This document shows positions 770 to 54,980 of a DNA stretch of 64,000 bases, one piece after another. Location of the stretch: assembly GCF_032191835.1 (NCBI RefSeq), contig NC_083227.1, positions 30,566,001-30,630,000 on the forward strand. Reading direction: 5' to 3'. A program made the translations under genes and the position numbers. How positions within the stretch are numbered: the first letter of the stretch is position 1; each line of letters begins with the position of its first letter. The notes under the pieces are model-generated. The model had not been told where the DNA came from and searched no databases. It saw only the letters and a list, made by a program, of their open reading frames with translations. The DNA comes from Heteronotia binoei (lineage: Eukaryota).

Positions 770-1380
770 GTTTGAGAGAGAAACAAAAGATGTCTGTTGT
801 GGTAAAGAAGATGGAAATGTTATCACTTAGTTGCCTGGGGTGGTAGCTTAAGACAGTCGTCAGGACACTTGAGTGGGTAATGGAGGCCTGCTGGGTCATG
901 AGCCTCTTTAAAGCATCTGTTTCTCTTCTGTTGCTCTCTGGAAGGGTCCCCTGTCCATGGGCATTGCATCTTCTGCCTTTCTTGATGGTAGGAGGCCAAT
1001 GGTGGCCAAGCGGACTTGTTTTAACACAGGGAGATTGAGAGATGTCCCTCACCCCAAAAGCTGTCCCTTGTCCTCCCAGTTGGGCTGCCACTCAATCCAC
1101 CTGCGCTTTGCATGCATTTGAAGGGCATGGTTCTGCTCCCCGCTAGTGAAGTTGTCACAGGCTCCTCCCCTTCCTGTCAGGTGCTTGTAGTTTGGTAGGC
1201 TCTGTGCTTTGGCTGCCTGGGCATTAAAGGTGAATCTGGAAAGTTTGAAGATCACAGTCTCAGAGGGACCATGGCTTAGTGGTGGAGCATTCGTTTTACA
1301 TGTGAAAGTCCACCGTTTCAGTCCTTGAGTATTTTCAGTTAAAGGAAATGGCCATCTTCTGGTACCTCTGTGGTAGTTAC

Positions 1381-1690
1381 ATAAGAACATAAGAGAGGCC
1401 ATGTTGAATCAGGCCAATGGCCCATTCAATCCAACACTGTGTGTCACACAATGGCCGAAACTCAGGTGTCATCAGAAGGCCCGCCAACAGGGCCAGAACT
1501 TCAGAAGCCCTCCCACTGTTGTCCCCTCAAGCACCAAGAATACAGAGCATTTCTGCCCCAGACAGGGCTCCCTCTATACCTTGTGACTAAGAGCCACTCA
1601 CGGACTTTGCTCCACGTGTTTATCCAGTCCCCTCTTGAAACTGTCTATGCTTGTAGCTGCCACCACTTCCTGTGGCAGTTCTTGGAGATC
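1381..1690 (-). mobile_element. CR1 LINE 3' fragment
   Basis: Begins ataagaacataagagaggccatgttgaatcaggccaatggccc, the reverse complement of a CR1 3' tail. The same block recurs at 12342, 15496, 18118 and 57632. Confidence 0.75.
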
Positions 1691-2029
1691 CTATTCTGGA
1701 AGGTGAAACAAGATTGTACCACAGAGACTTGAGTCAGTATAAGGCAACTTTGTATGAAAGCAGCCTTCAGGCTTCTCAGCATAAGGAAGAAGTGAAATCC
1801 TAATTAGTGATACAGCAGCCCACTCACAATAAAGAACTGACAAATGGTCTGGTGGTGATAACGAACAGAACCTCTATATGCAAAGGCAGTATACCTGTTA
1901 CGCGCCCCAAGTCTGTTTTTAAAGACCCAGTCCATTTTCCCTTTTCATCCTCCTGCCCCACACACTACTGTGTATATGACAGCTTCCTGTCACTTCTGAC
2001 CCTGTCACTACCAGCCGCTCTCAGTTGAG

Positions 2030-2222
2030 AGGGATGGGCTGTGACTCAGCGACAGTATCTGCTTGGCATGCAGAGGGTCAACCCCCGGCATCTCTACTTA
2101 AAAAGACCAGGAGGTATCTGATATGAAAGACTTGCCTGAGACCTTGGAGAGCCGCTGCCAGTCTTGAGTAGACAATACTGATTTCGATGGTCTGATTCAA
2201 TATAAGGCAGCTTCATGTGTTT
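2030..2222 (+). mobile_element. tRNA-derived SINE (Squam3-like)
   Basis: tRNA(Ala)-like head (gggctgtgactcag...cccccggcatctc), body ccttggagagccgctgccagtc, tail tataaggcagcttcatgtg. Confidence 0.8.
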
Positions 2223-2690
2223 ATTTGAGAGAAGATCTGCACTCACAAAGACAACTGCATGTGTGTGGCTCTGTCTGGATTTAGCTATACCCCACCCATC
2301 CCCCCACATGGGGACTACCTGATTCAATCATCCCTCTGTTTTATCCTCACCACAGCTCGGTGAGGTAGGTTAGGGGGAGATTGGCTCCTGGTGACCTTAT
2401 AGAGAGAATGACACACCTTGTATTGAGGGTGAAATCTTGAATTTGTGCAGCCAATCAGCACGTAAGGATGGATCTGGCCTCCAGGTGATTGGTCATCAGA
2501 GTTGCTGAAAATCAGGCTTTTGTCTTAGCAGACATGCCAACTTGATCTGCTGGACTTCGTGAAAAGGAAATTGAAAGATTTTCAGATTTGGGTCCAAAAG
2601 TACGTAGTTTATAAATTACCATTTGAACACAAATGGCTTGGGTTTTGTTCCTATTTTAATAGATTATTGCTTAGCCATAAAAAATACGTC

Positions 2691-2857
2691 TAGGGCTTTT
2701 TTTGGTAGCAGGATCTCCTTTTCATATTAGGGCACACACCCCTGATGTAGCCAAGATGTACCCCTGTACTAAGAGCCCTGTAAGCTCTTGGAGGATTGGC
2801 TACATCAGGGGTGTGTGACCTAATATGCAAAGGAGATCCTGGTTCCCAAAAGCCCTG
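2691..2857. mobile_element. Palindromic MITE (hAT-like)
   Basis: tagggctttt...aaagccctg termini. Internal cctgatgtagcc / ggctacatcagg inverted repeat. Confidence 0.75.
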
Positions 2858-2964
2858 CTTATGTCTGTGCATCAAATGCAAGAAAGATAGTGTTAATAAA
2901 ACTGACATTATATTGTTTTCATTAATTATAGCCTATATGGTCTAATCAAGCCTTGAATTTTCCC

Positions 2965-3230
2965 TAGAAGGTAAAATGACTAAATGGAGGCTATTGTGCT
3001 TTGGGCTTATCATGAGAAAATGTTAACTCATTGGAAAAGACAATAATGCTAGGAAAAGTTGAAGGCAACAGGAAAAGAGGAGGGCCCAACATGAGATGGA
3101 CCTAGTTTAGGAAGCCATGCCCCTCTATTTGCAAGACCTGAGTAAAGTTCTTAATGATAGTACATTTTAGAGAGCATTTATAGAGTTGCCACAAGTGGAA
3201 GCAACTTGTCAGGACATAAAACCCACCACA
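2965..3230 (+). mobile_element. RTE/BovB-like LINE 3' fragment
   Basis: ggaaaagacaataatgctaggaaaagttgaaggcaacaggaaaagaggagggcccaac encodes the EKTIMLGKVEG.RKRG RTE C-terminus. Paralogous to 32575-33055 and 37763-38062. Confidence 0.75.
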
Positions 3231-4719
3231 AGGTCAAAAGTTATCTAGAATTAGCGGCTTTCTAACAGCGTAAGTTGACTTTGTTAAAGAGTACCATGAA
3301 CTTAAGGAAAAACAGCAGCATTTTCAATAATGTTTCTATTTAACATCATTAAGAGTGATGCTGTTTTCCTCTGAAAAGACCAGCTTTTAATGTTCAGTTT
3401 AAAAATTGCCTTCCATCCATTAGAATTGCAGACATTGACAAATTCTCTGCTTGGTTTTGGACAAACAAGTCCTTTAAATCTGGTTCTGTCCCAATACCAA
3501 TGGAACTTTTTAACGTAATGTTGCTTTGTGTTCTTACCAGCACATCTTTGTACTATAAGATCCAGACTAATGGGTGTGGGATCTCATTTTTTAAAGATTC
3601 ATGTTGCTGTATTGCTGTCATAAATGTTTTTATTCCTGGATCTGATGAAGAGAAATACATTAAAGAGAGTTTTTCCTTCTATAATTGCAACTTTTATTTG
3701 TTACATCAGAAGATATAGGTGGATAATCAAATTAATAATGTTTTGCATGGTACCTCTGCCTCTTGTTTCCAACTAACCCTACTCGGTAACAGCCGTTCCA
3801 CCTTCTGGGTACTTATGAGGCCTGTTGGGTCCTCATTCTGATTTGTATCTGACAAAGTGAGCTTTGACTAATGGAAGCTTGTACTCTGAGTCTGGAGAAT
3901 TTTGCTGGTCTTTAAAGGGCTACTGGACTTGAACACTGGAAGGTATAATCGTTTACTGTTTTTATTTTACACAGATTGGCAGTCCACATATCTGTAAAAT
4001 TCTCCATCAACACTACATTTCAAATGAATCAACTTTCTTTCCTGTCAGCCTTCTTCATAGTCCAACTTTCACACCCATATAGGGTAATGGAGAAATTGAA
4101 TACTATGTCACAAATTAACTTGGTCTTGGCTTTCCTTTAAAATGCAATCTGATCTAGAACTACTGCTGTTGATTTCAGGGGACATATAGAGTAACTTTAA
4201 GGTGGGACTGCATTGTGACAGGGCTACTGCCTTCTAAAACAATTGGAGTTCAGAGGATTTAGAAGGGCATAACTCTTAAGACGCTTGAGTCCAGCAAGCT
4301 CCGTCCTCTTCTAGAGCTAGAAAAAGGGAAAGATGATGCAATCAAATAATATAGTGATGGACGGTGTATATTTTATTTTTGTAAGTCTGTTGAAGTACTG
4401 GTTTTTGCAGGATATTTTTTCCCTTCCTGTACTTTCCTAGAAAATTGGTATTACATAACAACATAGAAGAGAAGAGAAAAAATAGGGTTACCAGATGCCC
4501 TCTTTTTGTGTGTGTGTGTCAATCCTCTTGGTGTTTTTTAAAAATGATTTAAATGCCTTATTTTGGGGTTGGGAGGCTTAGTAGCAATTACCACAGCTTA
4601 AATAGTTGGGGCATTTAACATGAGACTCTTGTCATAGAGTGATCAGTTGTTAGAAGTAGTCAGTGGGGAACTGTGTCCTCATTTTTTCCTTTCAAAATAT
4701 GGTAAATCTCCAGATAAAT

Positions 4720-5200
4720 TAGACTGTTAGCAAAAGTAAACTCTGCCTCTGAGGACGTACAGAGCGCCTCATCCCCTGGACCACACCCTCCTTCCCCCTC
4801 CCCGCTCCCTCTGAGTCGCATCCAAGACTCCTCCTGCCCCGGGACTGCTTCCGGGTGCCTTTTGTTGGCTTGTGGGCGGCGGGGGGAGGGTTGCATCGCG
4901 GCGGATGCTGCCACGGCCTGGAGCAGAAAGGAAGGCACGGTGCAAAAATCCAAGAGCACTTAGGGGCGGCTTGACTGGGAGACAGCAAAAGAGAGGGTGG
5001 GAGAAGCCAGATCGGCGGAGAAAAGAGCGCTTTGTGGACGAGCTGCCGGTGCAAACGCTGGAGAAAGAAGCAGGCGGAAAATCGGCAGGGCGAGCAGCAA
5101 ATCTGGCCATGATGCTGGTAAAAAAGGCTGGGGTGGAAGGAGGATACGCGGGGCCGGGGGGTAGTATTTGCGTCCCCTATATGGGGCATTGCTTGGATGC
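4720..5200 (+). promoter_or_regulatory. CpG island / likely promoter of KRAB-ZNF gene A
   Basis: Local GC and CpG enrichment in CpG-depleted surroundings. ETS-type cttccggg motif near 4848. Lies ~2 kb upstream of the KRAB-A exon. Confidence 0.7.
4905..5117 (+). CDS. Candidate first coding exon of gene A (ATG 4905 or 5109; ends ...AANLAMML)
   Basis: Open frame to CTG|gtaaaa (gt at 5118). Phase 0 matches the KRAB-A exon (AMML|[10 protein letters not shown]). The donor is only moderate and the start choice is uncertain. Confidence 0.4.
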
Positions 5201-5704
5201 ATCCCAGGTGTAGGTGTGTGAAAATGTAGTTCTCTCCGTAGTATTTGCCCAACTGACATCAGTGCATTTAGGTTAGAGGAATCGAGTGCAGGATTGCTTT
5301 ACAATCTCCTGCAGCTAAAATTACAGACAGTACCTTAAAGATAGAAGGGCCAGTGGCGTGATGGGGTCGCGAAGAGTCAGACTCGACTGTGCGTTAGGAG
5401 GCATTAAGGTCGTCCTCACGATAAACGTGCCAGTTTTGCTCCTGTCGCTAAATGTTTAGATGTCAGTTGGTTTACAGTGGGAAAGAAATGCCCTCTTTTT
5501 GACCCAGGGTTATTAGCAATAGAATAATTAACAGGCATTCTCACATTCTGACATACTACTGTTTTATGGTTTCCCACGCTAATGCAACCCAGATTAGAGG
5601 TTTTCTGAATTTGTTAATTTTACTATTCTGCTATTGGATTTTAACTTTGTACCACTATTCCAATCCCCACCAGCTATATGTGGCTGTGCTTACTGTACCT
5701 CATT

Positions 5705-5830
5705 CCTCGTCTGAAGAAGCGCGCATGCATACGAAAACTTACGTTCTGAATAAAATTAAGTTGGTCTTAAAGGTGCAATCGACTCCTATTTTGTTCTACT
5801 ATTTTAGACCAACACGGCTGCCTACTTAGA
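5705..5830 (+). mobile_element. Penelope-like element terminal fragment with minimal hammerhead core
   Basis: ctgaagaagcgcgcatgcatacgaaaacttacg...ttggtcttaaaggtgcaatcgactc. Related copies at 3845, 15270, 25916 and 58710. Confidence 0.65.
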
Positions 5831-6345
5831 TAGCTTTACAGTGGAGTAATTCTGCCCAGGATCTCACTGTCAGAGCCAGGGTACATTTATTGGAGCAAAA
5901 ATAAAAGACTAAGAGTTTGATTTCACTATAAGCTTGGTTTATAGGTAATACAGGGTGGTGGTGGTTGTTTTAAGCAGGAACGCGGTTCTGGCTGACTTGG
6001 TTTCAGGGGGTGTGGCCTAATATGCAAATAAGTTTCTGCTGTTTTTTTCCTAATAAAAAAGCCCTGAACTAGAATTCACTTCTTCAGGTGCAATGAGCGG
6101 ATCATTGCTGAGTAGATCATTTATGTAGGAATATGGAACAAACTAACAAACAGCAGGATCAAAGGGTCATGAAATGCTGGAAGAACCTGGTGAAATGTAG
6201 TTGTGTAAAATTAAAGTCTAATCAGGAAAAAGGCAAAGGCCCTTCGCTAGTGAGATTTTAGACCAAGGGCGCCTTAGAGGTGTAAGCTTTTGAGAGTCAA
6301 AACTCCCTTCATCTTTGGCTCTTAAAACTTGTAAAATGTGAAACA

Positions 6346-6613
6346 CCAGTCGTTTCTGATGATGGGGTGATGTCACATCATGACATTTTCATGGTAGACT
6401 TTTTAGGGGCAGTTTGTCATCGCCTTCCCCAGTCATCTACACTTTCCCCCCAGCAAGCAGGGTACTCATTTTACCGACCTCGGAAAGATGAAAGGCTGAG
6501 TCAACCTTGAACCGGCTACCTGAACCCAGCTTCTGCCGGGATCGAACTCAGGTCGTGAGCAGAGGGCTTCAGCTGCAGTACTGCAGCTTTACCACTCTGT
6601 GCCATGGGGCTCT
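6346..6613 (-). mobile_element. Sauria SINE (Squam1-like)
   Basis: The reverse complement reads agagccccatggcacagagtggtaaagctgcagtactgcag...gttcaggtagccggttcaaggttgactcagcc...gactggggaaggcgatgacaaac. Paralog of 26124-26430. Confidence 0.85.
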
Positions 6614-7059
6614 GAAAACTTATAACCCCCCCAAAATCTTGTTGGGTCTCTAAGATGCTACTGGATTCAAATCTAGCTGTTACGGTGCCGACCTCCTGAA
6701 ACTGTCTTCTCTAGCTATGCTAAGCTAGTTAATGAGTGGAAAGTTATAGGTTTTGTTGAAGAATTTGTGGTTATAATGGAATAAAAAACTCTAAATCCTG
6801 GTTCAGTCAATGGGCGGGGGGAGTATATTGTTAGTAAACTCTTAAACAATAAACCACAAAATAGCTGTATCTGGGATTTAGCTGTATCTTTCCTCCCATT
6901 GAATCTGGATTTGGTATTTTTCTTAACTGTGACTTCATCTGAGCCTGTGAAGCTTTACAAAGTCTATGGGCTGTATAGATCTTTGTGTTAATGGAGCAAC
7001 GGCATTGTTCTCAGGGCAGCAGGCACTGTGGAGGCATTTGCTTTTTTTCTTTCTTTCAG

Positions 7060-7186
7060 GGCCAAGTGACTTTTGAGGATGTGGCTGTATATTTCACAGA
7101 GAGTGAGTGGACTCTGTTAAATCGAGGGCAGAGAGCCTTATACTACGAGGTCATGCAGGAGAATCATGAGAATGTGGTCTCTTTGG
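7060..7186 (+). CDS. Gene A KRAB-A exon
   Basis: Acceptor tttctttcag|, donor G|gtaag. Exactly 127 bp, phase 0 to 1 (canonical KRAB-A). [42 protein letters not shown]. Confidence 0.95.
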
Positions 7187-7624
7187 GTAAGGATCCTGTT
7201 GTCACTGGACATAATGATCTCTTTTGCAGGTGTGTACGTAGAGTAATACTACAAGGACATTTCTGAGGGATGTGGAATTGTGATTTCAAAGTCATGATAC
7301 GTAGAAATAAGGACTATCCCTTATGTGTGCTGAAGAATTGGTGCATGCACATCTTTCCTCAGCAAATCCTTGCTTCCATGGATTTGTACTGTCTCTAAGC
7401 GTCTCTGTTACCTAGAAGAAAAGCCCTGTAGGGTTTTGTGGCTTGCATATTTTTCTTCTGCAGAGCCTCAATTCAAAATGAAACCATAAAACCTCTCCCT
7501 ACTTTCCAGCTACAGACTCCATTCGTTTAGCTGCTGTACACTAAGAGTGGGAAGTAAAAGGGAGGAAGAGAAACCCTTGTGTAAATATATAATAATCAGC
7601 ATTCAGTGCCTTTACATTCAATAT

Positions 7625-7815
7625 TGCTCTGACAAGGATGGCCCAGGGTAGCCCGATCTCAGAAGTGAAGCAGATTCTGCCCTGGTTAGTACTTGGATGG
7701 GAGACCACCAAGGCAGTCCAGCATGGCTTCAGAGAGACAGGCAATGGCAAATCACCTCTTGCCTTGAAAACCCTATGGGATCGACATAAGTCAGCTATAA
7801 CTTGATGGCACTTTC
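7625..7815 (+). mobile_element. 5S rRNA-derived SINE with RTE/Sauria-type tail (5S-Sauria-like)
   Basis: gcccgatctc...gaagtgaagcag...ccctggttagtacttggatgggagacc matches the 5S rRNA internal control region, followed by a gcaatggcaaatcacc...taagtcagc tail. Confidence 0.8.
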
Positions 7816-7855
7816 TGCTACCAAATGCAATCTGATGCTATTTGTTTCTGCACAG

Positions 7856-7939
7856 GATTTCCTGTCATCAGATCCCGCTTGATCTCTCGGTTGGAACAAG
7901 GGGATGCACCATGGATTCCTGATCCAGACACTGTGGAAG
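7856..7939 (+). CDS. Gene A KRAB-B exon (B1), GC-AG donor
   Basis: Acceptor tttctgcacag|. GFPVIRSRLISRLEQGDAPWIPDPDTVE matches the KRAB-B box. 84 bp, phase 1-1, ending at AAG|gcaaga. Confidence 0.85.
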
Positions 7940-8134
7940 GCAAGAATTCTTTTCTCTGCTCTATCGCACCTCAGTCAAAAAAACACCAAGGCTGGTTTGT
8001 TCTCCATTCTCAAAAGTCTTCAGTGTTGAGCAAAGGCCTAGAGTTTTCACGAAAGCAAGGAGAAAACTACCACTGCTACTTCCAGTTAGAATATGAATCA
8101 TTGCTTATTCACCTTGCCTCTTTCTTTTAACCAG

Positions 8135-8236
8135 GGTTTCCTGACATGAAAATGAAGGTGGGCCTGGAAGAGGAGCCATGGGCCCCCATTTGCCAGGGTC
8201 CTGAGGGACGAGGTGCCTCCCTAGTTGCCTGTTCAG
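8135..8236 (+). CDS. Gene A second KRAB-B-like exon (B2)
   Basis: Acceptor tttcttttaaccag|, donor TCAG|gtgagt. 102 bp, phase 1-1. GFPDMKMKVGLEEEPWAPICQGPEGRGASLVACS. Confidence 0.75.
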
Positions 8237-8584
8237 GTGAGTGGCAAGGCTTAAGCAACCATGAGGATCTCTTTAACTGTGTGCCATTTCTCCATGATCA
8301 AACTTTACTATAAATAAGTGGCAGAAAAATGTTTGTTTTTATGACCAGTATTGTTAGGTTTATTTCAAAAATCACTTTTCTACCACTCAGGCTTCTAAAT
8401 ATAACAGCCATGAAACATCGGCGAAGGCCTTGTCTCTATGCCTTGCTGTTAGCCCTCCATAGTAACAGGTTAGTCACCGTGTAAAACAGGATGCTGAACA
8501 AGATGGATGACTGGTCTGATCCAGCAAGGCTCTTCTTTTATTTATAAAATATGATTGTGGTATAGTGGTTGCTGGTTAGTGTAG

Positions 8585-8805
8585 TGCCCTGACCTGGACA
8601 ACCCAGATTAGACCAGACCTGGATATCCCAGGCTAGCCCAGTCTTGGAATCTAAAGCAGGGTCAGCCCTGATTAGTATTTGGAAGGGAGACCACAAGCAG
8701 GCAAAGTCACCATGCAGATACAGGCAATGAGAAACCACCTCTGAATGTCTCTTGCCTTGAAACCCCAAAGGGTTGCTGTCAGTCAGCTGTGACTTGACAG
8801 CAAAA
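8585..8805 (+). mobile_element. 5S rRNA-derived SINE
   Basis: tgccctgacctgga head, aagcagggtcagccctgattagtatttggaagggagacc, and tail cagtcagctgtgacttgacagc. Confidence 0.7.
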
Positions 8806-9123
8806 AGAATAGTTGTGGTTAGGTTATCAGACTAAGGTTGGGGAGATCAGAAGCTGACTGGGTAAACTTGGGCCAGTCATTCTCAGCATAAGCCACCTCA
8901 CAGAGTTGTTGTAAGGATGAAGAAGGCCCTCTCCCTTGAGGTTTGCCTTGTACTTAAGTTACTTTTTCTGTGGGGAGGCACTGTAGGTCAGTGGAAGAGC
9001 ATCTGCTTGGCTTACAGAAGGCCCCAGGTTCAATTCACACTGGTGGATACATCCTCCTTTATTTCCAATTCCCTTTCCACATTGGGTATGTTTTCCAATT
9101 GTCTTCCATTATGTACGCATAAT

Positions 9124-9291
9124 CAGGTGTGGAATTCCAGCAGGAGCTCCTTTGCATATTAGGTCACATCCCACTGATGTAGCCAATCCTCCAAGAGCTT
9201 ACAAGGCTCTTTTTTGTAAGCTCTTGGAGGACTGGCTACATCAGGGGTATGTGGCCTAATATGCAAAGGACCTTCTAGAATTCCACCCCTG
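9124..9291. mobile_element. Palindromic hAT-like MITE
   Basis: caggtgtggaattc...gaattccacccctg termini. Flanks cgcataat / tacataat (degenerate 8-bp TSD). Confidence 0.8.
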
Positions 9292-9481
9292 TACATAATC
9301 AATTTCATATGGTAAATTCCATCTATCCCTCTGCATGATTTTCGAGGCTTAAGCTTACCCTGATCCCCCAGTTTGAACCAGTAGAAGAGCTATGGATACT
9401 GGATCACAGAGGCTTGAAGGGACACAAAATAAAGTACATGAATTTCTGTTAGAACACAGTTCAGCCAAACACGATTTTATT

Positions 9482-9711
9482 TTTATTTATTCATTTATAC
9501 CCTGTTTTTCTCCCCAGTGGGGACCCAAAGCAACTTATATCATTCTTCTCTCCTCCATTTTATTCTCACAACAACCCTGTGAGGTGGATTGGGCTGAGAG
9601 AGTGTGACTGGTGCAAGGTCACCCAGTGAGTTTCCATGGCACGAGTGGGGATTCAAGCCTGGGTCTCCCAAATACTAGTCTGACACTCTTAACCACTACA
9701 CCACATTGGTG
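9482..9711 (-). mobile_element. tRNA-derived (MIR/L2-tail-like) SINE
   Basis: Ends taaccactacaccacattgg (reverse complement of the head). Contains acaaccctgtgagg and a tttatttattcatttata tail. Confidence 0.7.
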
Positions 9712-9750
9712 TTTGGATTACCAGTCCTCACTTCTTCTTCTTCTTTTCAG

Positions 9751-9852
9751 TGTTTTCTAATGTGGTGATAAAACTGGAACCAGAAGATGACTCATGCCTG
9801 CCAGATCAGCCATGGTTTGAGGGAAAGGAGACTTTTTCAGCTGCCAGCAAGG
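9751..9852 (+). CDS. Gene A third KRAB-B-like exon (B3)
   Basis: Acceptor (ctt)n ttcag|, donor AAGG|gtaag. 102 bp, phase 1-1. VFSNVVIKLEPEDDSCLPDQPWFEGKETFSAASK. Confidence 0.75.
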
Positions 9853-9884
9853 GTAAGAAGGGACAGATAATTTTATATGTAGCC

Positions 9885-10141
9885 CAGGGATCCCCAACCT
9901 TTTTGAGCCCATGGGCACATTTGGAATTCTGACACAGTATGGTGTGTGAAGCAACAAAATGGCTGCTGCAGAAGGCAGAGCCAGACATAATGGTTGCTAC
10001 AGCTTAACCTCAATAACAGTGCAAATCCTTCAGCTGTGGTAGCAGCCTCTGCCAAAGCATTTTTAAAAAATCATCACAGAGTGCTAGAAAAGTTGTTGGT
10101 GGGCACCATGGTAGCCACACGTAGCACGTTAGGGATTCCTG
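9885..10141. mobile_element. hAT/Charlie-like MITE
   Basis: cagggatccccaacc...gttagggattcctg termini. Flanks atgtagcc / acatagcc. Confidence 0.7.
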
Positions 10142-10517
10142 ACATAGCCTTCTGCAGTCCTTTGTGACTTATGTTTTTCCTGAATGAAACATTCTCTTTG
10201 GTAGTAGTTGTTCTTATCTCAGTGGGGAGGGGGGCAAGAGCAGAGAAGAAGAGCTGCAGTATAAGTGCAGTATAAAATGTAGCAATTCCAAATTGCACCT
10301 GATGTTTCATGGTCCCAATACGGAGGTAAGGGGAACAGAGTCTGGGAGAACAGAGGAGGTACTGTGGTTATTTTTGCGAGACATAGAGGGTTAACTTTCT
10401 TGCAAGGTTTCATGTCCTTACAACTGACTCTTAAGTTCCTGTTTACTTTGAATCCTGATATTAAAATATCCTATCTGAAGCATTCCTTAGGTTATAGATT
10501 TTTGTTTCTTCCAATAG

Positions 10518-12232
10518 GCACTGGGTTTGTAAAAGAGGAAGATAATCTCCCTCCAAAAGACACTTCTCAAGCAGAATCAAATGAGATATTTATTGGAACT
10601 GACAGTATCTTTCAGCATCCCAAGATGGCAGATCAACGTGGAGAGAAAAAACAAAAAGAAAATTCCCTCAGAAATAGAATGAAAACGCTTTTATCATATA
10701 GAGGAGCAGGCAAAGAAATCGAGGAAGCTAAAATGCAAAAGACTGTATTTGGGGGAAAAAACAACCTTGGTGCACATAAAAGAAAATGTATGGAGGATAC
10801 ACTTCATCAGTGTTCCCACTGTGAGAAAACTTTCTGTAAGAAATTTCTCCTTATCGCTCATGAAAAATCTCATACAGAGGAAAAACCATATAAATGTTTA
10901 GTCTGTGGGAGAAGTTTTAGTCGAAGGTCAAATCTTGTTGAGCATGAAAAAAGCCACACAGGAGTAAAACAGCATGGATGCTTAGTCTGTGGTAAAAACT
11001 TCAATAGAAGATACCATCTTGAGGCACACATGAGAATTCACACAGGAGAAAAGCCATATAAATGCTCAGATTGTGGGAAGAGTTTCAGTTGGAAAACTTA
11101 CCTTATTGTCCACAGGAGAAACCATACAGGAGAGAAGCCGTTTAGATGCTCAGTCTGTGGGAAAAGCTTCAGTCAGAGTTCACACCTTTCTGGTCATGAA
11201 AGAAGTCACAGAGGTGAAAAACCATACCCATGCTCAGCTTGTGGGAAAACTTTTGGTAAAAGCTCACAGCTTCGTGTCCATGAGCGAATTCACACTGGTG
11301 AGAAACCATACAAATGCTCAGTCTGTGGGAAAAGTTTTAGGCATAAATCAAGTGTGGTTACACACAGGAGGATTCATATGAAAGAAAGTCCGTCTGTGCC
11401 CTCCATTTTTCCCACCAGCTTTAGATGTGAAAATATACAGGAAGATGAAAATCCATATACATGCTCAGTCTGTGGAAAAACCTTTGGTAATAAATCAATC
11501 CTTAGTACCCATGAGCTGATCCATACAGGAGAAAAACCATATACATGCTCAGTCTGTGGTAAAAACTTCACTCAGAAATCATCTGTTATAAGACATGAAA
11601 AAGTTCATTCACCAAAGAAGCAATATAAATGCTCAGTCTGCAGTAAAAACTTCAGTGGTAAAATGCATCTAGTTAAGCACACAAGAGCCCATTCGCGAGA
11701 AAACACACACAAATGTTCTACCTGTGGTAGCAGCTTCAATCAAAGATCAGACCTTATTGTACATGAAAAAATTCACACAGGAGTCAAACCATATACATGT
11801 TCAATCTGTGGGAAAAGTTTCAACCAAAGATCTCAGTATAGCCAGCATGCTAGAGTTCATAAAGAAGGAAAACCACATATGTGTTCATTCTGTGGTAAAT
11901 GCTTCAACCGCCAATCTTACTTCATCAGGCACGAAAAAAGTCACACACAAGAGAAACCATATGCATGCTCTTTGTGCGGTGAAAACTTCAGCTGCAGGAC
12001 CCACCTTATAACACACAAGAGGAGTCACAGAGGAGCTGTACCATTAGCATGCTCAGTCTGTGGTAAGAGTTTCAGTTGTAAAGCACACCTTGCTGTTCAT
12101 GAGAGAATTCACACAGGAGAGAAACCCCATTCATGTTCTGTCTGTGGTAAAAGTTTCGCTCAAAGGTCAAATTTGACTTGTCATGAAAGAATCCACAGAG
12201 AAAAGAAAAATGTCTCATGTCTTCCTAAATAA
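10518..12232 (+). CDS. Gene A terminal exon: spacer plus 16 C2H2 zinc fingers (7 + 9)
   Basis: Acceptor tttgtttcttccaatag| (phase 1). Uninterrupted frame with 16 CxxC...HxxxH units and TGEKP-type linkers. Stop taa at 12230-12232. Confidence 0.95.
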
Positions 12233-12626
12233 CACAAGGACAAAGAACTTCCACAGCCAGCAACATGTACTGGTTAGACTAGAGGATGAGATTAGAACCC
12301 GATTCAAATCCTCACTCTCCCAAGGAAGCTTGCTGTATGACATAAGAACATAAGAGAAGCCATGTTGGATCAGGCCAATGGCCCATCCAGTGCAACACTC
12401 TGTGTCACACAGTGGCCAAAAAATGTCATTGAGTTAGTCGCTCTCTGAGAATCTATAATATGGTTTCATCACCGAACAGTAAGTGTTCACATGGAGCATG
12501 TGCTTTGAAGTGGTTGAGGGGAGAGCGACTGAGAAATTAATGCATGTCCTTAATCTCTGAGGAAGAAGACAAGCAGTGTCCCTTGACCTTTCAGATGTGG
12601 GCATGAAATAACAAAATAATTCTTAG

Positions 12627-13214
12627 CTGAGGTGTCAAACATGTGGCCCAGGGGCCAAATCAGGCCACTGGAGGGCTCCTATCAGGCCCCTGAGCAACTG
12701 GCTTTCATCTGCTTCGTTCTCCCTCTCTCTTGCTTCCTTCTGCAGCACAGCATGCTTTGCCAGTCTTGCTCAATTGCACAGGAGCTACAGAGTGAAGCCT
12801 CTATCTTCTCCATTGGCTGAGGCTTCTCCGTTGCCATGCTCTCTCAATCACACAACAGAGCTACTGAGCCGAGCCTGTCTTCCTTCTATTGGCTGAGGTC
12901 CTCCCCCTCCTCAGTCTCCTGGGGAAGGAAGGAAAGAGCCAGAACTTCCTTTGTCTAGTTCCTGGAATCCCATGGGAGAGATACAAAGAAAGCACCTTTA
13001 AGACCATGTGCTAATGTTTTAACCATGTTTTATTTTTAAGGGTTTTTTAAAAAAAATTACTTAATTGTGTTGGTCTGTGTCTTTTATAAAGTTTATATCT
13101 CTGCTACCTAATCTTAAATAGGAACACACATGGCCCAGCCTGATATGGCCATGCCCATCAAAGTCTCATTTATTTCAGATCCAGCCCTCGTAACAAATTA
13201 GTTTGACACCCCTG
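12627..13214. mobile_element. hAT/Charlie-like MITE
   Basis: ctgaggtgtcaaac...gtttgacacccctg termini. Flanks attcttag / atttatag. Confidence 0.7.
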
Positions 13215-14361
13215 ATTTATAGTACTTTCCTTGCTGAGGTACATCGTTTTGAGACCATTCATTTCAGTGGACTTAGATGGGTGTAACTCTGCATATGGCA
13301 CTATTAGTGGACCACTAACCCATCTCTGAAGTTAACGTAGTAGGAATCTCCCTGGTGAACTGTACCATTGAACAATTACGCACACATTTCATGATTTAAA
13401 ATAGTGTTTGTGGTAAATAGCCTGGTTTCAGTTGTCTTTAAAATCAAATGAAGGACAAATAAGTCCCTTTACAATTTCCATCTTTAGGTTTGAAATTTTA
13501 TCCATCTAGGGTTTTTTTTAAAGAAATCCTAATGTATTTTTTAATACAAGATATACAAAAGAACACTTGTCAGATTGACCAAAGATTTAACTTGAGAACT
13601 GTATTAAGGATAATGTATTATACAGTGCCTTGGCATTGTAAAACATGCAGTTTTATGAATCCAATAATATTTTTTGCAAACAATTTTAATTAAATGAGAT
13701 AGTTTCTATAAGATTGCAGTGGGACTAGTTCTGCTTCGGTGTTGTTAAGAGGTTGAAGGTATGTTGTAACCGGTATCAAATAGGTTCCTCTGCACAGTGA
13801 TTTCTTGCTTGCAAATTGTGACTAATTATGTAACAGAAATTAATCAGATAGCTTTTGGTGAAGGTATGGTATCTATGAAAGCTATTTGTCTCTTAGCAAG
13901 TGCGCTATTGGAGGAACCAATGTCATCTCACATGCATCTCACCCACTGCTGCGTAGTTTTCTTCAGAGGAAGAAGGAACAGCAAAAAAAAATTTCTGCTG
14001 TTGATGAAATTAGGGGAGCTGAACTGCCCTGAAGCTTCTCCTTTGGCTGCCTCTGTCCAGGCAGACTTGAGGGACTGAGCTATGCAACATGGGGACACAG
14101 GCCTAAACTACATAGAGGCCTGAAATTCCATGACGAGCTCCAGGTCTGTCTTTTGGCCCTAGAAAAGCAACTTTGTCACACTACATATAATTAACTTGTC
14201 AAATTCCCTACTAAAAATGGCAACAATAGTAACCAGATGGCCATTGGTTCTGTTATAGAGCTTCCACTTTGCATGTGGAAGGATTCTGAGTTCAAGTTTC
14301 TGATTACAAGGATCCCAGGAAACCGGTAATGGGAAAGACCTTTACTGAAATAATAATACAA

Positions 14362-14863
<502 letters not shown>

Positions 14864-15269
14864 GTCTGATGCATAACCATTGGTCTCGTCTCCCCCCCCC
14901 CCGCCGCCCCCTCCACACACACTGCACAAGAGAAACTTTAGAAGCACTCATCAGGCAGGTACCCATTCCTTCCCTCCAACCTTTGGAGACAAAAGGAATT
15001 CAAGATTGCTAAGGAACAGGGCATGGAATATGTCACCCTATGATAATTGGGATAGAGCATGAAAGGACTGATAAGACCCCAAAGCTACAAAAAGGTTGCT
15101 GGATTACTTTGGCTCCTAATGTATTAAGCTGCAAAAACTTAGTATTTCTGTAATAATTCAGAACCAACTAGATTTCTGGGATATAAAGTTTTGAGAGTCA
15201 AAGCTCCTTTTGCTAAAAAGCGGGGGGGGGGGGGGGGAGTATCAGTACTCACATACGAGTATGCTTCAC

Positions 15270-15400
15270 ATATATGAAGAACTGTGCATGCACATGAAAG
15301 CTTATACCCAAAATTAAACTTTGTTGGTCTTAAAGGTACTACCGGACTCAAACTTTGTTGCTTCAGAAAACACAACTACCCACCTGACTCTGTCTTCACA
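15270..15400 (+). mobile_element. Penelope-like terminal fragment
   Basis: atgaagaactgtgcatgcacatgaaagcttataccc...ttggtcttaaaggtactaccggactc. Confidence 0.65.
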
Positions 15401-15727
15401 TATCTGAATAATTGTTTCAACAACCCAGTAGGGTAGGACACTTGGTACTGGGAGCAATGTCTAGTGAATTAAATCAACTGAAACTGGATTTGAACATAAG
15501 AGAAGCCATATTGGATCAGGCCAGTGGCCCATCTAGTCCAGTGCTCTCTCACACAGTGGCCATGCTAAACAAAGCTACATGTTTTTAAGGTGTAACTTGA
15601 TATAGGATAACACTGTTGGTCTACCAAAGGATGACCCTAGTTTTTTAAAAAAATATATAAATGCAGGTTCTTTTTTAAAAAAATTATGGGTGGCAGTCTG
15701 TTTGCCCTGAACCAGGAAGGAATGTTT

Positions 15728-16200
15728 CTTAATTTATTTTATTGGATTTATATCCCACTCTCCCCGCCAAAGCAGGCTCAGGGCGGCTCACAGGCCAATG
15801 ACAGTGTAAAAACGTACAGCATTATAAAACAAAAGCATAAAAATATTAAACATAACAGGTGCTATTTCATTCATAAAAGAATTAGCTAAGCAATATCCAG
15901 GGTTATTTTGTTGCCACAGTTTGCACCCGGTGGTCTGGCGATCTTATATATAAGTTGTTTCTACAGTTTACTCGGTCCGGTTCCATAATCAGTTGAATAC
16001 CAGATGGAATAATTCAGTCCTGCAGAACTGAGAGAGGTCCCACAAGGCCCTAATGTCATCAGGGAGTTTGTTACACCAATAGGGTGCAGCTTTGGAGAAG
16101 GCCCTGGCTCTAGTAATTTTTAGCCTGGCCACTTTCAGGCTTCAGCCCAGAATCAATAAGAGATTTTGTGTTCCTGAATGTAATACCCTCTGGGGAATAT
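15728..16200 (-). mobile_element. L2 LINE 3' fragment
   Basis: tttattttattggatttatatcccactctcccc...ggctcagggcggctcac tail (reverse complement), followed by decayed ORF2-like sequence. Confidence 0.55.
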
Positions 16201-16257
16201 ATGGGGAATAACGGTCCCTAAGGTAGGCAGGAATTATTGTTTTACTGACATAAAAAT

Positions 16258-16536
16258 GCAAGAAGAAGAATTGCAGATTTATACCTCGCCCTTCTCCCTG
16301 AATCAGAGACTTAGGGCGGCTTACAATCTCCTACGTTTTCTCCCCCCACAACAGACACTCTGTGAGGTGGGTGGAGCTGAGAGGGCTCTCACAGCAGCTG
16401 CCGTTTCAAGAACAAGTCCTGAGATAGCTTTGGCTAACCCAAGGCCATTCCAGCAGGTGCAAGTGGAGGAGTGGGGAATCAAACCTGGTTCTCCCAGATA
16501 AGAATCCACACACTTAACCACTACACCAAACTGTCC
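16258..16536 (-). mobile_element. tRNA-derived SINE with L2-type tail and (AAG)n end
   Basis: aagaagaagaattgcagatttatacc...cacttaaccactacaccaaactg. The family recurs at 19395, 27940, 29116, 33157 and 35843. Confidence 0.8.
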
Positions 16537-16582
16537 TTCCCCCTCCTCTTTCTTTGTGGAAAAAAGGCAGAAGAGTATAGCC

Positions 16583-16777
16583 TAGGGGTGGCCAAACTCG
16601 CTTAATGTAAGAGCCATATAGAAGAAATGTCAGATGTTGTAGGAAGGAAGAAAGGCAAATAGATGGGGGAGAGGTGAGGAAAAAAGTAACTTTAAATGCA
16701 TTATCCAAGCTGCCAACTGGTGGGTGCTTTGAGAGCCACACAATATGTGTGAAAGAGCCACAGTTTGGCCACCCCTG
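16583..16777. mobile_element. hAT/Charlie-like MITE
   Basis: taggggtggccaaact / agtttggccacccctg TIRs. Perfect 8-bp TSD GTATAGCC. Confidence 0.9.
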
Positions 16778-16947
16778 GTATAGCCCAATCTTGTCAGATC
16801 TCAAAAGCTAACCAGGGTCCATACTTGGATGGGAAATAATCAAGGAAGGCAATGGCAAACCACCTCTGCTTCTCTCTTGCCTTGAAAGCCCCTTTGCTGG
16901 GGTCGCTGTAAGTTAGCCGCAACTTGATGGCACTTCACACACACATA
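16778..16947 (+). mobile_element. 5S rRNA-derived SINE
   Basis: gcccaatcttgtcagatctcaaaagctaaccagggtc...tacttggatggg, then aggcaatggcaaaccacc and a (CA)n tail. Confidence 0.75.
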
Positions 16948-17763
16948 AACACACTCCTTTGAGAATTTAAAGCCCTCCCCCAGACCCAGTTTTGTTGGCT
17001 CCTGTTTTGAAGGAAGAGTTTTAAGGAAATGAAGCAATCTGCATACAGTCGTGGGGTGGCAGTTTCCCCCACCCTTCTGTGTTGTCATCTGTTGTTTTTG
17101 GTGAGGAAAGGGGAATATATGTTGCATTTAGAGATCTTAAGGGCTTCCCTGTATATTGATCGTGGTCTTTCACATCAGCTACTCACTGCCTACTCCTTTT
17201 TTAAAACTGGAGCTGCCAGAACAGAACCTGAGACTTTCTGCCTGCAAAACAGATGGTCTACCACGGAGCCATCCTGTGCAAAATGCCATTTAATTGCTTC
17301 TCTATATATCCTCTTGATGTTAAAAATAAAAAAGGCAGCAAATGAAGGTAGTTTTGCTAATCTTGGAGGCATAAGGAGGCAGGTCCCCAGGAGATCTTCT
17401 AGCTGAAGCCAAATCACTATTGATTTATAAGTGAAACTGTGGCATCCCTTGGGCATACCAGAAATAAGAGAATTAATTTAGAAAGGGCACGTAATAGAAA
17501 ATTGTTCCAGGGGATTGGCATGGAGATACGAGTTGGAAGTGACAAGTTAATTTGGGGGTTGACTGGGAAGTTCCTATACCTGCAAGCTCAGTAAGGAACC
17601 AGATTTCACCTTGTTAGGTAGGGATATCAGATCTGTGTTGGAAAATACCTGGAGACTTTGGGGGTGGATCCATGAGAGGGTGGGATTTGGATAGGGGAGG
17701 GGCGTCAGTATGGTACAGTGCCATAGAGCCCACCCTTTAAAGTAGCCATTTTCTCCAGGGAAT

Positions 17764-18203
17764 AGGGCTGCCAATCCCCAGGTGGGGGCAGGGTATCCCC
17801 TGGTTTGGAGGCCCTCCCCCTGCTTCAGGGTCATCAGAAAGCAGAGGAGGTGAGTGGAGGGAAATGTCTGCTAGGCACTTCATTATTCACCATGGAGACT
17901 GATTCCCATAGGAAATAATGGAGAATTGATCTGCAGGTATCTGGGACTCTGGGGGGGGGCTGTTTTTTTAGGTAAAGGCACTAAACTTTCAGTATAGCAT
18001 CCAGTGCCTCTCCCTAAAATACCCCCTAAGTTTCAAAAAGATTGGATCAGGGGGTCCAATTCTATGAGCCCCAAAAGAAGGTGCCTCTATCCTTCATTAT
18101 TACCTATGGAAGGAAGGCATAAGAACATAAGAGAAGCCATGTTGGATCAGGCCAACAGCCCATCCAGTCCAACACGCTGTATCACACAGTGGCCAATAAT
18201 TTT

Positions 18204-18241
<38 letters not shown>

Positions 18242-18540
18242 TATATACACACTGTGGCTAATAGCCACTGATGGACCTCTGCTCCATATTTTTATCTAAC
18301 CCCCTCTTGAAGCTGGCTATGCCTGTAGCCGCCACCACCTCCTGTGGCAGTGAATTCCACATGTTAATCACCCTTTGGGTGAAGAAGTTTAAAGTTTAAG
18401 GCATTTAAATAGGAGTGTGGCCCCTTTTAAATGTGATGGCCAGAACTCCCTTTGGAGTTCAATTATGCTTGTCACACCCTTGCTCCTGGCTCCACCCCCA
18501 AAGGTCCCAGATATTTCTTGAATTGGACTTGGCAACCCTA
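17764..18540. mobile_element. hAT-Blackjack-like MITE (AGGGTTGCCA termini) interrupted by a CR1 fragment at 18118-18388
   Basis: tagggctgccaatcccc...ggacttggcaacccta. The internal CR1 tail is flanked by aaggcat duplicates. Paralogs at 22765-23262, 23915-24232 and 50054-50410. Confidence 0.75.
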
Positions 18541-19394
18541 CCAGGGCAGCTGATTCTGCCAGCTGGAGATCAGTTGTAAAAGCAAATCTCCAGGACTCAC
18601 CTGGAGAGTGCAATCCTAAACTTAGGTATATGTATAGTGGTGGGGGAGGCAGCCCAATGCACAGAAGTACTTTCCCTTGCTCCACCTCCAAAGCACCTAA
18701 AGTGCAAATAATAAATAGGCCTTCCAGTGAAACAGGTTCATCTTGCACACCTACGTTCCTTGCCTGTAGGGCAAGATGATTCTTACATTCTATTTGGGTT
18801 ATTCATTCCTTCTGTTCACAGAACACAAAGACCAGAAATATTTTACTATATTTTATCAAATAGCAGAAAGGGAATAAGAAAGGAAATAGCAGAAAGGGAA
18901 TAAGCTACTTCAGTGTTTAATATTTCATGTTTAATATTTATGCTTCCAAACTGCCAGAAATAAACATATATTATGCAAAGTATTGACAGATAAGGAACAA
19001 AAAACTCAAAACCACACACTTATGTTTCATTTATTCCAGTTGTAGGACAGAATTTTTAGTGCAGAAGTCACACAGAGTTCACATGTCATGCACTTCCTTC
19101 CGTCTTCCATTTCGAATGAATAGAGGCCTACTTAAATTACTTCCGTTTAACAGATTCAGTTTTTTCCTTTTTAATTTCCTGTTCTTTGGGAGGAAATTAA
19201 GCAAGGTGAAGAGAGGGAAAAAATAGGTTGTCCCTCATTGTATGGTGCCAACTCTAGAAATTCCTGGAAACTTGGGGTGGAGTCTATGGAAGGTGGGGTT
19301 TGGGAAGGTGGGGACCTCAGTGTGGTATAACGCCACACCACAGTCCTCCCCCCAAAATGACCATTTTCTCCAGCAGAACTGATCTCTGTAGTCA

Positions 19395-19670
19395 GGAAGA
19401 AGAAGAGATTGGATTTATAACCTGCCCTTCACTCATAATCTCAAAGTGGTTTACAGTCTCCTTCCCTTCTCCTTTCCACAACAGACACCCTGTGAGGGAG
19501 GTGGGGCTGAGAGGGCCCATACAGAAACTTGTCTTGAGAGAACAGCTCTGCTGAGAATTTGTGGCTGACCCAAGGTCACACCAGCAGCTGCATGTGGAAG
19601 AGTAGGGAATCAAACATGGTTCTCCCAGATTGGAGTCTGCACACTTAACCACTATACCAGACTGGCTCTC
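19395..19670 (-). mobile_element. tRNA-derived SINE (L2-tail family)
   Basis: gaagaagaagagattggatttata...cacttaaccactataccagactggctctc. Inserted into a tagggttg-type MITE starting near 19222. Confidence 0.8.
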
Positions 19671-21542: not shown

Positions 21543-22687
21543 TTAAGGGGTTTCGCTGGAATGGGTCCGCTCGTGTATCCCGAGGTGTGATCTCTGGTTG
21601 AAGCTCTTTCCACAGTCAAAGCATTTATATGGCTTCTCCCCTGTGTGGCTTCTCTCGTGGATGATGCTGTAGGAGCGTTGGTTGAAACTCTTCCCACAGT
21701 GCGAGCATTTGTATGGCCTCTCCCCTGTGTGGATCCTTTTGTGTTCAATGAGAGCTGAGCTCCGGCTGAAGCTTTTCCGGCAGTCCAAGCAGTTGTAGGG
21801 TTTTTCACCAGTATGCATCCTCTCGTGCCTGATCAGGTGTGACTTCTGCCTGAAGCGTTTCCCACAGTCACAGCATTCATATGGCTTCTCCCCTGTGTGT
21901 GTTCTCTCATGTTGACTTAGGCTGGACCTAAAGCAGAAGCTTTTTCCACACTGGGGACATTTATACGGTTTTTCTCCTGTGTGAATTCTTTGATGCTTAA
22001 TCAGCTTAGAGCTCTCATTGAAAGACTTCCCACAGTCCGCGCAAGCATAAGGTTTCTCTTCCGAATGAGACCGCTCATGTTTAATGAGGCTTGACCGGTG
22101 ATTGAAACACTTTCCACAGTCCTGGCATTTGTAGGGCTTCTCATCAGTGTGGATTATTTTATGTGTCATCAACCAAGAGCTCTGGCTGAAGCATTTGCCA
22201 CAGTCTGAGCATTTGTATGGTTTCTCCCCTGTGTGGGTTCTCTTGTGGGCCATGAGGTTTGCCCTGCGGTTGAAGCTTTTCCCACAGTCTGAACACCTGT
22301 ACGGTCTCTCTCCTGTGTGAGTTCTCTCGTGTGTAATGATGTGAGATCTCTGGCTGAAGCTTTTCCCGCATACTGAACATTTGTAGGGTTTTTCTCCCGT
22401 GTGAGTTCTCTCATGTCTGATAAGGTAGGATTGCTGTTTGAAATCTTCCCCACAAAAAGAACATGTGTACAACTTGTCTCCCAGGTCTACTTTTTGACAA
22501 TTCAAGCTGTCAAAGCTCTCTTGGAAGCTTCTTGCACAATGTGATTCTTCCACATAAAGAAGGGCTCTTCTCGATATTTCCCCAGGATGAGTTACATCCT
22601 CTTTCAATGATTCCCCGTTGACTACCACTTGCTGCGGTCTTTCCAGCAGATGATTTGCCTCGCTTTCATTCATTTGCACATTAACTG
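21543..22687 (-). CDS. Gene B terminal exon: spacer plus 11 C2H2 zinc fingers
   Basis: Minus-strand acceptor ttctttgtttcttccag| (ctg at 22688-22690), phase 1. 11 intact fingers from YTCSFC to HERTH. Stop at 21543-21545. Confidence 0.95.
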
Positions 22688-34439: not shown

Positions 34440-34649
34440 AGTGTGTGAAAAGTTCACATTTGGCTGAATCTTTTCCTTGGAAGCTGAAAGGCATTGTTAG
34501 GTGTATATGCTGCAGGACTGAGGTTTGAGAAGAACAGGAACAAATCATGCCAAAATATTGACTGGAAATTCTTTTTGTCTGATTTTATTTTTATAGTTAC
34601 CAGATTTCACCATTTGTTTCCAGGACTAGATGTTCAGTCAGAAATAAAA

Positions 34650-35306
34650 ATGGAGTTCCATAACTCAGCTATCCAAGTTCCAGAGGAGAAAATGGAGGGA
34701 GAAGAAAGAGACTCTCGAGTTCTTCAGGTTGAGGCCACTGGGAAGTTCCTGTCTGGTGTGGATCCCCAACAAGTTAAAGGGGAATCAGATGAAGAGATCT
34801 ACCTCAACCCAGATGGCCAGTGGCAGGATTTCCAGAAGACTGTGAGGCCTCTTCACTCAGAAAGCGGGAAACCCCAGCAGCCTGGATCTGTAGACTGGGA
34901 CCATATGACATCTTTTTCAGCATCTCTGACAGCCAACCAGGAGCCTAGAGGAAAAGCTGCCCAGGTGCCAAAAAGTCCAGAAGAGAGAGAAGGAATCCTA
35001 GATACGGATGTTACCCACCTAAACGTATGTTGCCAACAGTTCAGGCAATTTTCCTACCAAGAGGCTGATGGGCCCCGAGAGGTTTTCAGGCATCTCCAGG
35101 ATCTTTGCCATCTATGGTTGAAGCCAGAGACCCACACAAAGGAGCAAATTCTGGAGCTGGTGATCCTGGAGCAGTTCCTGGCCATTTTGCCTCCAGAAAT
35201 GCAGAGCTGGGTCAGGGAAGACAACCCTATAACCTGCTCCCAGGCGGTGGCCCTGGCAGAGGATTTCCTGCTGTGGAAGGAAGAGGGGGAACTGCAGGAA
35301 GAGCAG
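34650..35306 (+). CDS. Gene C first coding exon: N-terminal extension plus SCAN domain
   Basis: Acceptor tttgtttccag| at 34623, ATG 34650. [62 protein letters not shown]...AVALAEDFL is a SCAN domain. Donor CAG|gtgaga (phase 0). Confidence 0.95.
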
Positions 35307-36067
35307 GTGAGAGGATTTCGGTTTGGCCTTCCCCTGTACAAGCAAAATCTGTTCCACTCAGTGTGGAAGAAAGGGGATCATGGGAACTGAGCATTCTCCC
35401 ACCTCTTGCAGGCTTTTGACCAGGATCTAGTGCCACTCTCCGTAGAATTACACCCTTCTTGAGGTTGTTGATTCCCATGGACTTAGAAGGGTGTAACTCT
35501 CTTTAGAATGGCACTGTAAATGATCGCACAGATAACCTTTCTTCCTCCATGTCTAGCTTGTAATGAGAGCTGGAAAAGGTTTAGGAAAGAATAACTAGAA
35601 TAATAAAGTCTGCTTTTATTGGGAGGGGAAAGACATCAAGAGGAAATAGGAGAAAAGGTAAAGCTTCCTCCACTACTGTCCAGCCTAATTGTTAAGATCC
35701 TCTTCCCAGACTCTGTGCTCCTGCCTACAGAGTTGAAGCACAAGCTGAACAGACACAGGGCTTTAAATGGGGGGTGGGGGGGAGTGTCCTCTCCCTTGAC
35801 AACAGTGTCACAGTTTTTTAGGCACCAGGTCAAAAAGTTTCCATTTATTATTTGCTTTATTTATGTCCCACCTTTCTCTTCAGTGGGGTTCCAAAGAAAC
35901 TTACATTTTTCTCCTTACCTCCTTTTAAATCTCACAGCAACCCTGTGAGGTAGGTTAGGCTGAGAGTGTCTGACTGGTCCAAGCTTCCATAACAGAGAGT
36001 GCTGGTTTCCCAGATCCTAGTCCGACACTCAAACCATTGTGTCAAATTGGGTCGCTTTTTGCCCAGG

Positions 36068-53048: not shown

Positions 53049-54980
<1,932 letters not shown>

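Follow-up and report, generated by a model that had tools for sequence, protein, structure and literature searches.

The 64-kb stretch of Heteronotia binoei DNA analyzed here (the window) carries a KRAB zinc-finger gene in which the KRAB-A exon is followed by three small exons, termed B1, B2 and B3, and the question raised by the locus is what these exons are and why they are kept. An initial annotation had read them as the product of an exon triplication that gave a modular set of KRAB-B cassettes, any of which could be skipped on a single finger domain. The sequence comparisons described below favor, with a probability of roughly 0.55, an old triplication of the B exon in which B1 would be the working B box and B2 and B3 would be included as frame-preserving spacer exons.

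Organization of the Gene

The plus strand of the window holds what is predicted to be an intact and complete KRAB zinc-finger gene with 16 fingers and without a SCAN domain, the features of which are listed in Table 1. The exon coordinates, lengths and phases of the initial annotation proved exact, and its count of 16 fingers is confirmed by the 16 finger motifs of the last exon, all of which lie in that one exon (Pfam zf-C2H2, E = 9.6e-72; zf-H2C2_2, E = 1.4e-102). The coding length summed over the exons is 9+127+84+102+102+1715 = 2139 nt, corresponding to 712 codons plus the stop, in frame. The KRAB-A box is recognized by Pfam PF01352 both in the window (7060-7185, E = 1.6e-21) and in its orthologue at the Gekko kuhli locus described below (L001, E = 2.2e-23), and in the window it has the VMQEN form found in two turtle KZFPs (P0033 and P0023), the mammalian form being VMLEN. 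No SCAN exon was found in a search upstream of KRAB-A. The CpG-rich stretch ahead of the gene is the probable promoter and first-exon region, with the promoter role putative. The nine bases at 5109-5117 are assigned as the probable start because they run in frame into KRAB-A, the exon of which begins in phase 0, and because they are kept, together with their GT donor, in G. kuhli.

Table 1. Features of the predicted KRAB zinc-finger gene in the H. binoei window with the corresponding positions in G. kuhli locus L001. The dN/dS values compare the two geckos (Nei-Gojobori; one species pair with 9-13 changes per exon).
Feature	Window	Strand	L001	dN/dS	Description
CpG-rich stretch (probable promoter and first-exon region)	4751-5500	+	6637-7497		GC 0.46-0.64; CpG observed/expected 0.55-0.81 versus 0-0.4 in the surroundings
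Start codon and end of exon 1 (putative)	5109-5117	+	7280-7288		ATG ATG CTG, then GT donor, phase 0; within the CpG-rich stretch
KRAB-A exon	7060-7186	+	8879-9005	0.27	127 bp, phase 0 to 1; acceptor ag, donor gtaagg
B1 exon	7856-7939	+	10001-10084	0.45	84 bp (84 nt in G. kuhli), phase 1-1; acceptor ag, GC donor (gaag/gcaaga); canonical KRAB-B exon
B2 exon	8135-8236	+	10349-10438	1.00	102 bp (90 nt in G. kuhli), phase 1-1; acceptor cag, donor gtgagt; diverged B-exon copy
B3 exon	9751-9852	+	12204-12305	0.99	102 bp (102 nt in G. kuhli), phase 1-1; acceptor cag, donor gtaaga; diverged B-exon copy
Last exon	10518-12232	+		0.44 (linker); 0.22 (fingers)	570-codon open frame; linker of ~97 residues, 16 C2H2 fingers, stop at 12230-12232

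The introns contain repeated DNA. Part of the KRAB-A/B1 intron (7675-7713) is SINE-like and was masked or left out of the searches and scripts. The B2-B3 intron is packed with SINE-like repeats (8392-9030 and 9483-9704) that match L001 at several other sites and lack a collinear counterpart in it; with the intron filled in this way, the exon copies were probably spaced much more closely at first. None of B1, B2 and B3 is situated inside repeated DNA, the SINE-like copies lying between the exons, as at 9483-9704.

Further zinc-finger material is present elsewhere in the window. A SCAN-domain exon on the plus strand at 34632-35318 has 41-63% identity to squamate SCAN-ZNF proteins and is followed downstream by a finger array at ~41000-41800, also on the plus strand, and together these are predicted to be a SCAN zinc-finger gene in its own right. 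The minus strand carries a further three C2H2 finger arrays, at 53190-54350, 59490-60513 and 21546-22226; in the first of these, tblastn alignments reveal one or more in-frame stops, and it may be a pseudogene. A short segment at 14565-14661 has 88% identity to finger-coding DNA in the G. kuhli orthologue, at L001 13563-13665.

Exon Quality of B1, B2 and B3

All three small exons are open, have phase 1-1 and are multiples of three in length, and B1 alone stands directly behind KRAB-A. This symmetry means that each could in principle be skipped in frame, as the initial annotation had pointed out. The exons were ranked against every AG..GT or AG..GC interval of 60-180 nt within 7187-10517 with a length divisible by three and an open phase-1 frame, which gave 149 candidates, using a rough splice-site matrix that serves for ranking only. 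B1, B2 and B3 take ranks 1, 2 and 3 of the 149, with B2 the best and with summed splice scores of 12.9-15.6, and the best candidate sharing no end with any of them scores ~2. The splice sites are good, as the first reading had them, except that the B1 donor is GC and not GT. An in-frame GT replacement for this donor was sought, and none of similar strength was found; the other B1-anchored candidates are weak GC donors further downstream. When the same candidates are followed into G. kuhli, B1, B2 and B3 all remain open AG..GY intervals in the right phase, compared with 8 of 53 alignable decoys (~15%), a rough baseline that carries no p value as the decoys overlap. B1, B2 and B3 are thus predicted exons that exceed chance expectation.

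Relationship to the KRAB-B Box

A KRAB-B profile was built from 16 boxes of unrelated proteins, with E values calculated at Z=3890. B1 matches the profile with 22.8 bits (E 9.3e-6) in the window and 33.0 bits (E 6e-9) in G. kuhli, and by BLASTP it has 54-59% identity to turtle and mammalian B boxes. B3 is a weak match, with 14.4 bits (E 0.004) in the window and 17.1 bits (E 0.0006) in G. kuhli, and B2 is not significant, with 4.3 bits (E 5.7) and 5.3 bits (E 2.7), respectively. The earlier view that each exon carries B-box-like text consequently stands for B1 and, more weakly, for B3 but is not borne out for B2. In a six-frame scan of the window and L001 with the profile, covering 3890 segments, the four best matches are B1 and B3 of both geckos. 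B2 aligns with the long turtle B exon over its full length, although weakly (34%; E=0.013 against a database of 120 proteins), and both B2 and B3 match the long reptile B exon in length. Pfam returned nothing for B1, B2, B3, the linker and the G. kuhli protein P0121 (introduced below), its KRAB model spanning box A only and no B-box model being included, and no PDB sequence was matched by B1, B2 or the G. kuhli copy of B3.

The relationship between the three exons is clearest in the DNA. B2 and B3 align end to end with 61-66% identity over 88-100 nt (shuffle p<0.0005), and B1 and B3 have 62-72% identity over 71 nt (shuffle p 0.0005-0.005). The B1/B2 pair gives a shuffle p of 0.003 in G. kuhli and 0.11 in the window, and comparisons of the three peptides give p 0.002-0.08. 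In G. kuhli, B1, B2 and B3 start with identical GFP codons and carry, at similar distances, a run of acidic residues that ends in PW. The triplication of a KRAB-B exon claimed by the initial annotation is therefore supported, as most of the shuffle tests on DNA give p <=0.005; B1 appears as the canonical exon, B3 as a recognizable diverged copy, and B2 as a copy recognizable mainly through B3. The kinship of B2 to the B box is drawn from its end-to-end paralogy with B3 and its weak match to the turtle B exon.

In both geckos the I-K-L-E-P encoded by B3 at 9768-9782 of the window (L001 12221-12235) has acidic residues behind it, with an extra preceding proline in G. kuhli. We take this motif to fit the psi-K-x-E sumoylation or synergy-control consensus, for which a chance match in 33 residues is not unlikely.

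The Gekko kuhli Orthologue

Word searches with the unique linker led to a single relative, P0121 (KAL8213200.1), a partial hypothetical protein of Gekko kuhli. An exhaustive comparison of the linker with 1.84 billion representatives returned P0121 only, plus one spurious repeat protein, and a linker word search restricted to proteins of 313-997 amino acids gave no match. With the whole finger exon as the query, the matches are generic ZNF proteins of at most 51% identity. P0121 has B1, B2, B3 and the linker in the same order as the window; its model is partial, has an odd ending and may be purely ab initio, making it supportive but weak evidence. AlphaFold2 run on P0121 without an alignment was uninformative (pLDDT 37).

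The locus of P0121, L001, is collinear with window positions 873-19400 (~19 kb) at ~75-88% identity, and it is identified as the orthologous locus because this collinearity includes the introns. The borders of KRAB-A, B1, B2, B3 and the finger exon are kept, as are all five splice-site pairs and the start codon, and the B1 donor is still GC. The only indel in the B exons is a 12-bp in-frame deletion in B2. The G. kuhli linker has 4+14 = 18 extra bases near window 10751-10762, with the frame kept overall, close to where the gene model leaves the open frame. The KAL8213200.1 model (10001-15853), which is partial and flagged UNVERIFIED_CONTAM, begins at B1, and an intact KRAB-A exon and start codon are located 1-2.7 kb upstream of it in L001. 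The contamination flag looks unfounded at this locus, given that L001 is syntenic with the gecko window over ~19 kb. Taken from the two sequences, this is a putative gene maintained by selection and common to at least two gekkonid lineages.

Rates of Evolution

The dN/dS values in Table 1 place KRAB-A and the fingers lowest and B1 and the linker at intermediate values, with B2 and B3 close to unity. B2 and B3 combined show 16.5 non-synonymous and 4.5 synonymous changes, so that an omega of 0.22, the level of the fingers, is rejected (p=0.003) and an omega of 1 fits. The nucleotide identity of B2 and B3 between the geckos is 88.5%, compared with 86.3% for the pooled introns. These values indicate that the gene works, that the amino acid sequence of B1 is constrained and that those of B2 and B3 are essentially free. 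The first reading had named neutral decay of the exons in orthologues as grounds for doubting it, and the G. kuhli comparison divides on this point: the sequences of B2 and B3 are unconstrained, yet as predicted exons they are not decaying, since splice sites, frame and length class are kept in both geckos. Free sequence combined with kept frame and splice sites fits exons in which presence and reading frame count and sequence does not.

The paralogous copies are ~35-40% apart in DNA, compared with a neutral divergence of ~14% between the species. This several-fold greater distance between the copies suggests that B2 and B3 have been open and spliceable for far longer than the time since the species split.

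Interpretation of the B Exon Series

The reading that we favor proposes that the KRAB-B exon underwent two tandem duplications, well ahead of the split between the H. binoei and G. kuhli lineages. B1, directly behind KRAB-A, would have stayed a B box, its match to the KRAB-B consensus and its purifying selection being the reasons to regard it as the working one. B2 and B3 would have shed most of the B-box sequence constraint and yet would remain strongly spliced and frame-preserving. The most likely reason for their retention would be that they are normally present in the mRNA, where a frame or splice defect would ruin the downstream finger array. Together they would add ~68 residues of flexible, probably disordered, spacer between the KRAB module and the fingers. 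We infer the inclusion of B2 and B3 in mRNA, their constitutive use, their disorder and their spacer function from the genomic comparison. In three RNA runs, 9-19% of the words sampled from 7000-12300 are present, and these may match intronic SINEs and not the exons. In the KRAB-KAP1 structure the KRAB-B box is an accessory, disordered element that makes no visible contact to KAP1, and its mutation barely affects recruitment (PMC9753469); relaxed copies acting as a spacer would fit this disordered and accessory nature.

An alternative that we consider unlikely is that B2 and B3 are dead relics that are no longer spliced in, the protein consisting of KRAB-A, B1 and the fingers and gene finders having been deceived by the exon-like appearance of the copies. 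The intron-like rate of B2 and B3 is, at such a short distance, also what dead relics would be expected to show, and among 5.8 billion clusters and 1.8 billion representatives only one partial hypothetical model contains these exons. Relics would however have to have kept near-consensus acceptors and donors as well as open frames in both geckos, with the 12-bp deletion as the sole indel, against a neutral retention baseline of only ~15% per candidate, and it is difficult to see how copies that are ~35-40% diverged could be intact had selection not acted on frame and splicing. Far less probable, and close to dismissible, is a separate origin of B2 and B3 as ordinary spacer exons that resemble the B box by chance. 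The KRAB-B profile misses B2 and some peptide pairs are marginal (p 0.05-0.08), as such an origin would predict, but B2 and B3 align across the whole 102 nt, B3 is the top match after B1 in the six-frame scan in both geckos, the G. kuhli exons share the GFP start codons and the acidic-PW motif at a matching distance, and the length of both exons is that of the long reptile B exon.

The proposal closest to the initial annotation, in which B1, B2 and B3 would be alternatively spliced cassettes, giving up to 8 isoforms, whose combinations tune KRAB-A/TRIM28 repression on one DNA-binding domain, is in our estimate rather improbable. The symmetric phase 1-1 exons would allow it, GC donors such as that of B1 are enriched in alternatively spliced genes (PMC2490688), TRIM28 binding strength can vary with the B subdomain (PMC3912051), and alternative splicing is known to yield KRAB-ZNF isoforms (PMC3731817). 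Against it, a dN/dS of ~1 is unexpected for distinct tuned modules, and together with the intron-like nucleotide identity it speaks against the idea that every copy is tuned to modulate TRIM28. The B consensus is moreover lost in B2, the splice sites of B2 and B3 are the strongest in the region, which is more typical of constitutive exons, and the B box has no visible KAP1 contact and mutations in it have little effect on recruitment (PMC9753469). Slightly more doubtful still is a functional series in which B1 would pack on KRAB-A and B2 and B3 would act as regulated cassettes or as carriers of short motifs, such as I-K-L-E-P in B3, altering repression strength or partner choice; if this were true, one finger array would come in several effector strengths.

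Comparison with Known KRAB Genes

The KRAB subfamilies described consist of A only, A+B and A+b, with one exon per box, and alternative splicing of KRAB exons is known (PMC3731817). The gecko gene resembles KRAB(A+B) genes such as ZNF10/KOX1 and ZNF93 in its layout, which starts with a short coding exon and continues with KRAB-A on a 127-bp exon of phase 0 to 1, a small B exon of phase 1-1 and a single large exon for the linker and the C2H2 fingers. It differs from these in the addition of two diverged B copies between B1 and the finger exon, and in B1 being 84 bp long with a GC donor. A KRAB(A+C) subfamily reportedly exists besides KRAB(A+b). In common with both, the gecko gene has a divergent small exon after KRAB-A, which in those subfamilies replaces or supplements the classical B box and is accompanied by different repression potency. 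Unlike in these subfamilies, where one variant box takes the place of B, the gecko variants follow an intact B box and derive from it, a comparison made by description.

Tandem duplication of N-terminal effector exons is a feature shared with multi-KRAB genes, examples being P0005 of Euleptes (two A+B units) and P0021 (two A boxes), both from geckos. Each extra B box in multi-KRAB genes has its own KRAB-A, whereas the gecko gene described here has multiplied the B exon alone. In the KRAB-AB of Xenopus XFIN the sequence of the B subdomain can set the strength of TRIM28 binding (PMC3912051), which is the premise of the cassette proposal; XFIN itself has one B box. None of the 120 proteins examined places more than one B box behind a single A, and a small survey found no published description of tandem multiplication of only the B exon in a KRAB gene. 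As far as a survey of this size can tell, the tandem B-only exons may be new.

Significance

No family of vertebrate repressors is larger than the KRAB zinc-finger genes, in which the function of the B box is still poorly understood. The weight of the present case would rise if RNA showed regulated skipping of the exons; at present it is a neat evolutionary oddity, seen in a lineage-restricted gecko gene, and offers no new regulatory principle. The locus, in which a conserved B box is followed by a series of two relaxed copies, provides a small and clean case of the multiplication of a phase 1-1 exon, and it also appears to show a duplicated effector exon decaying into linker while the frame is held.
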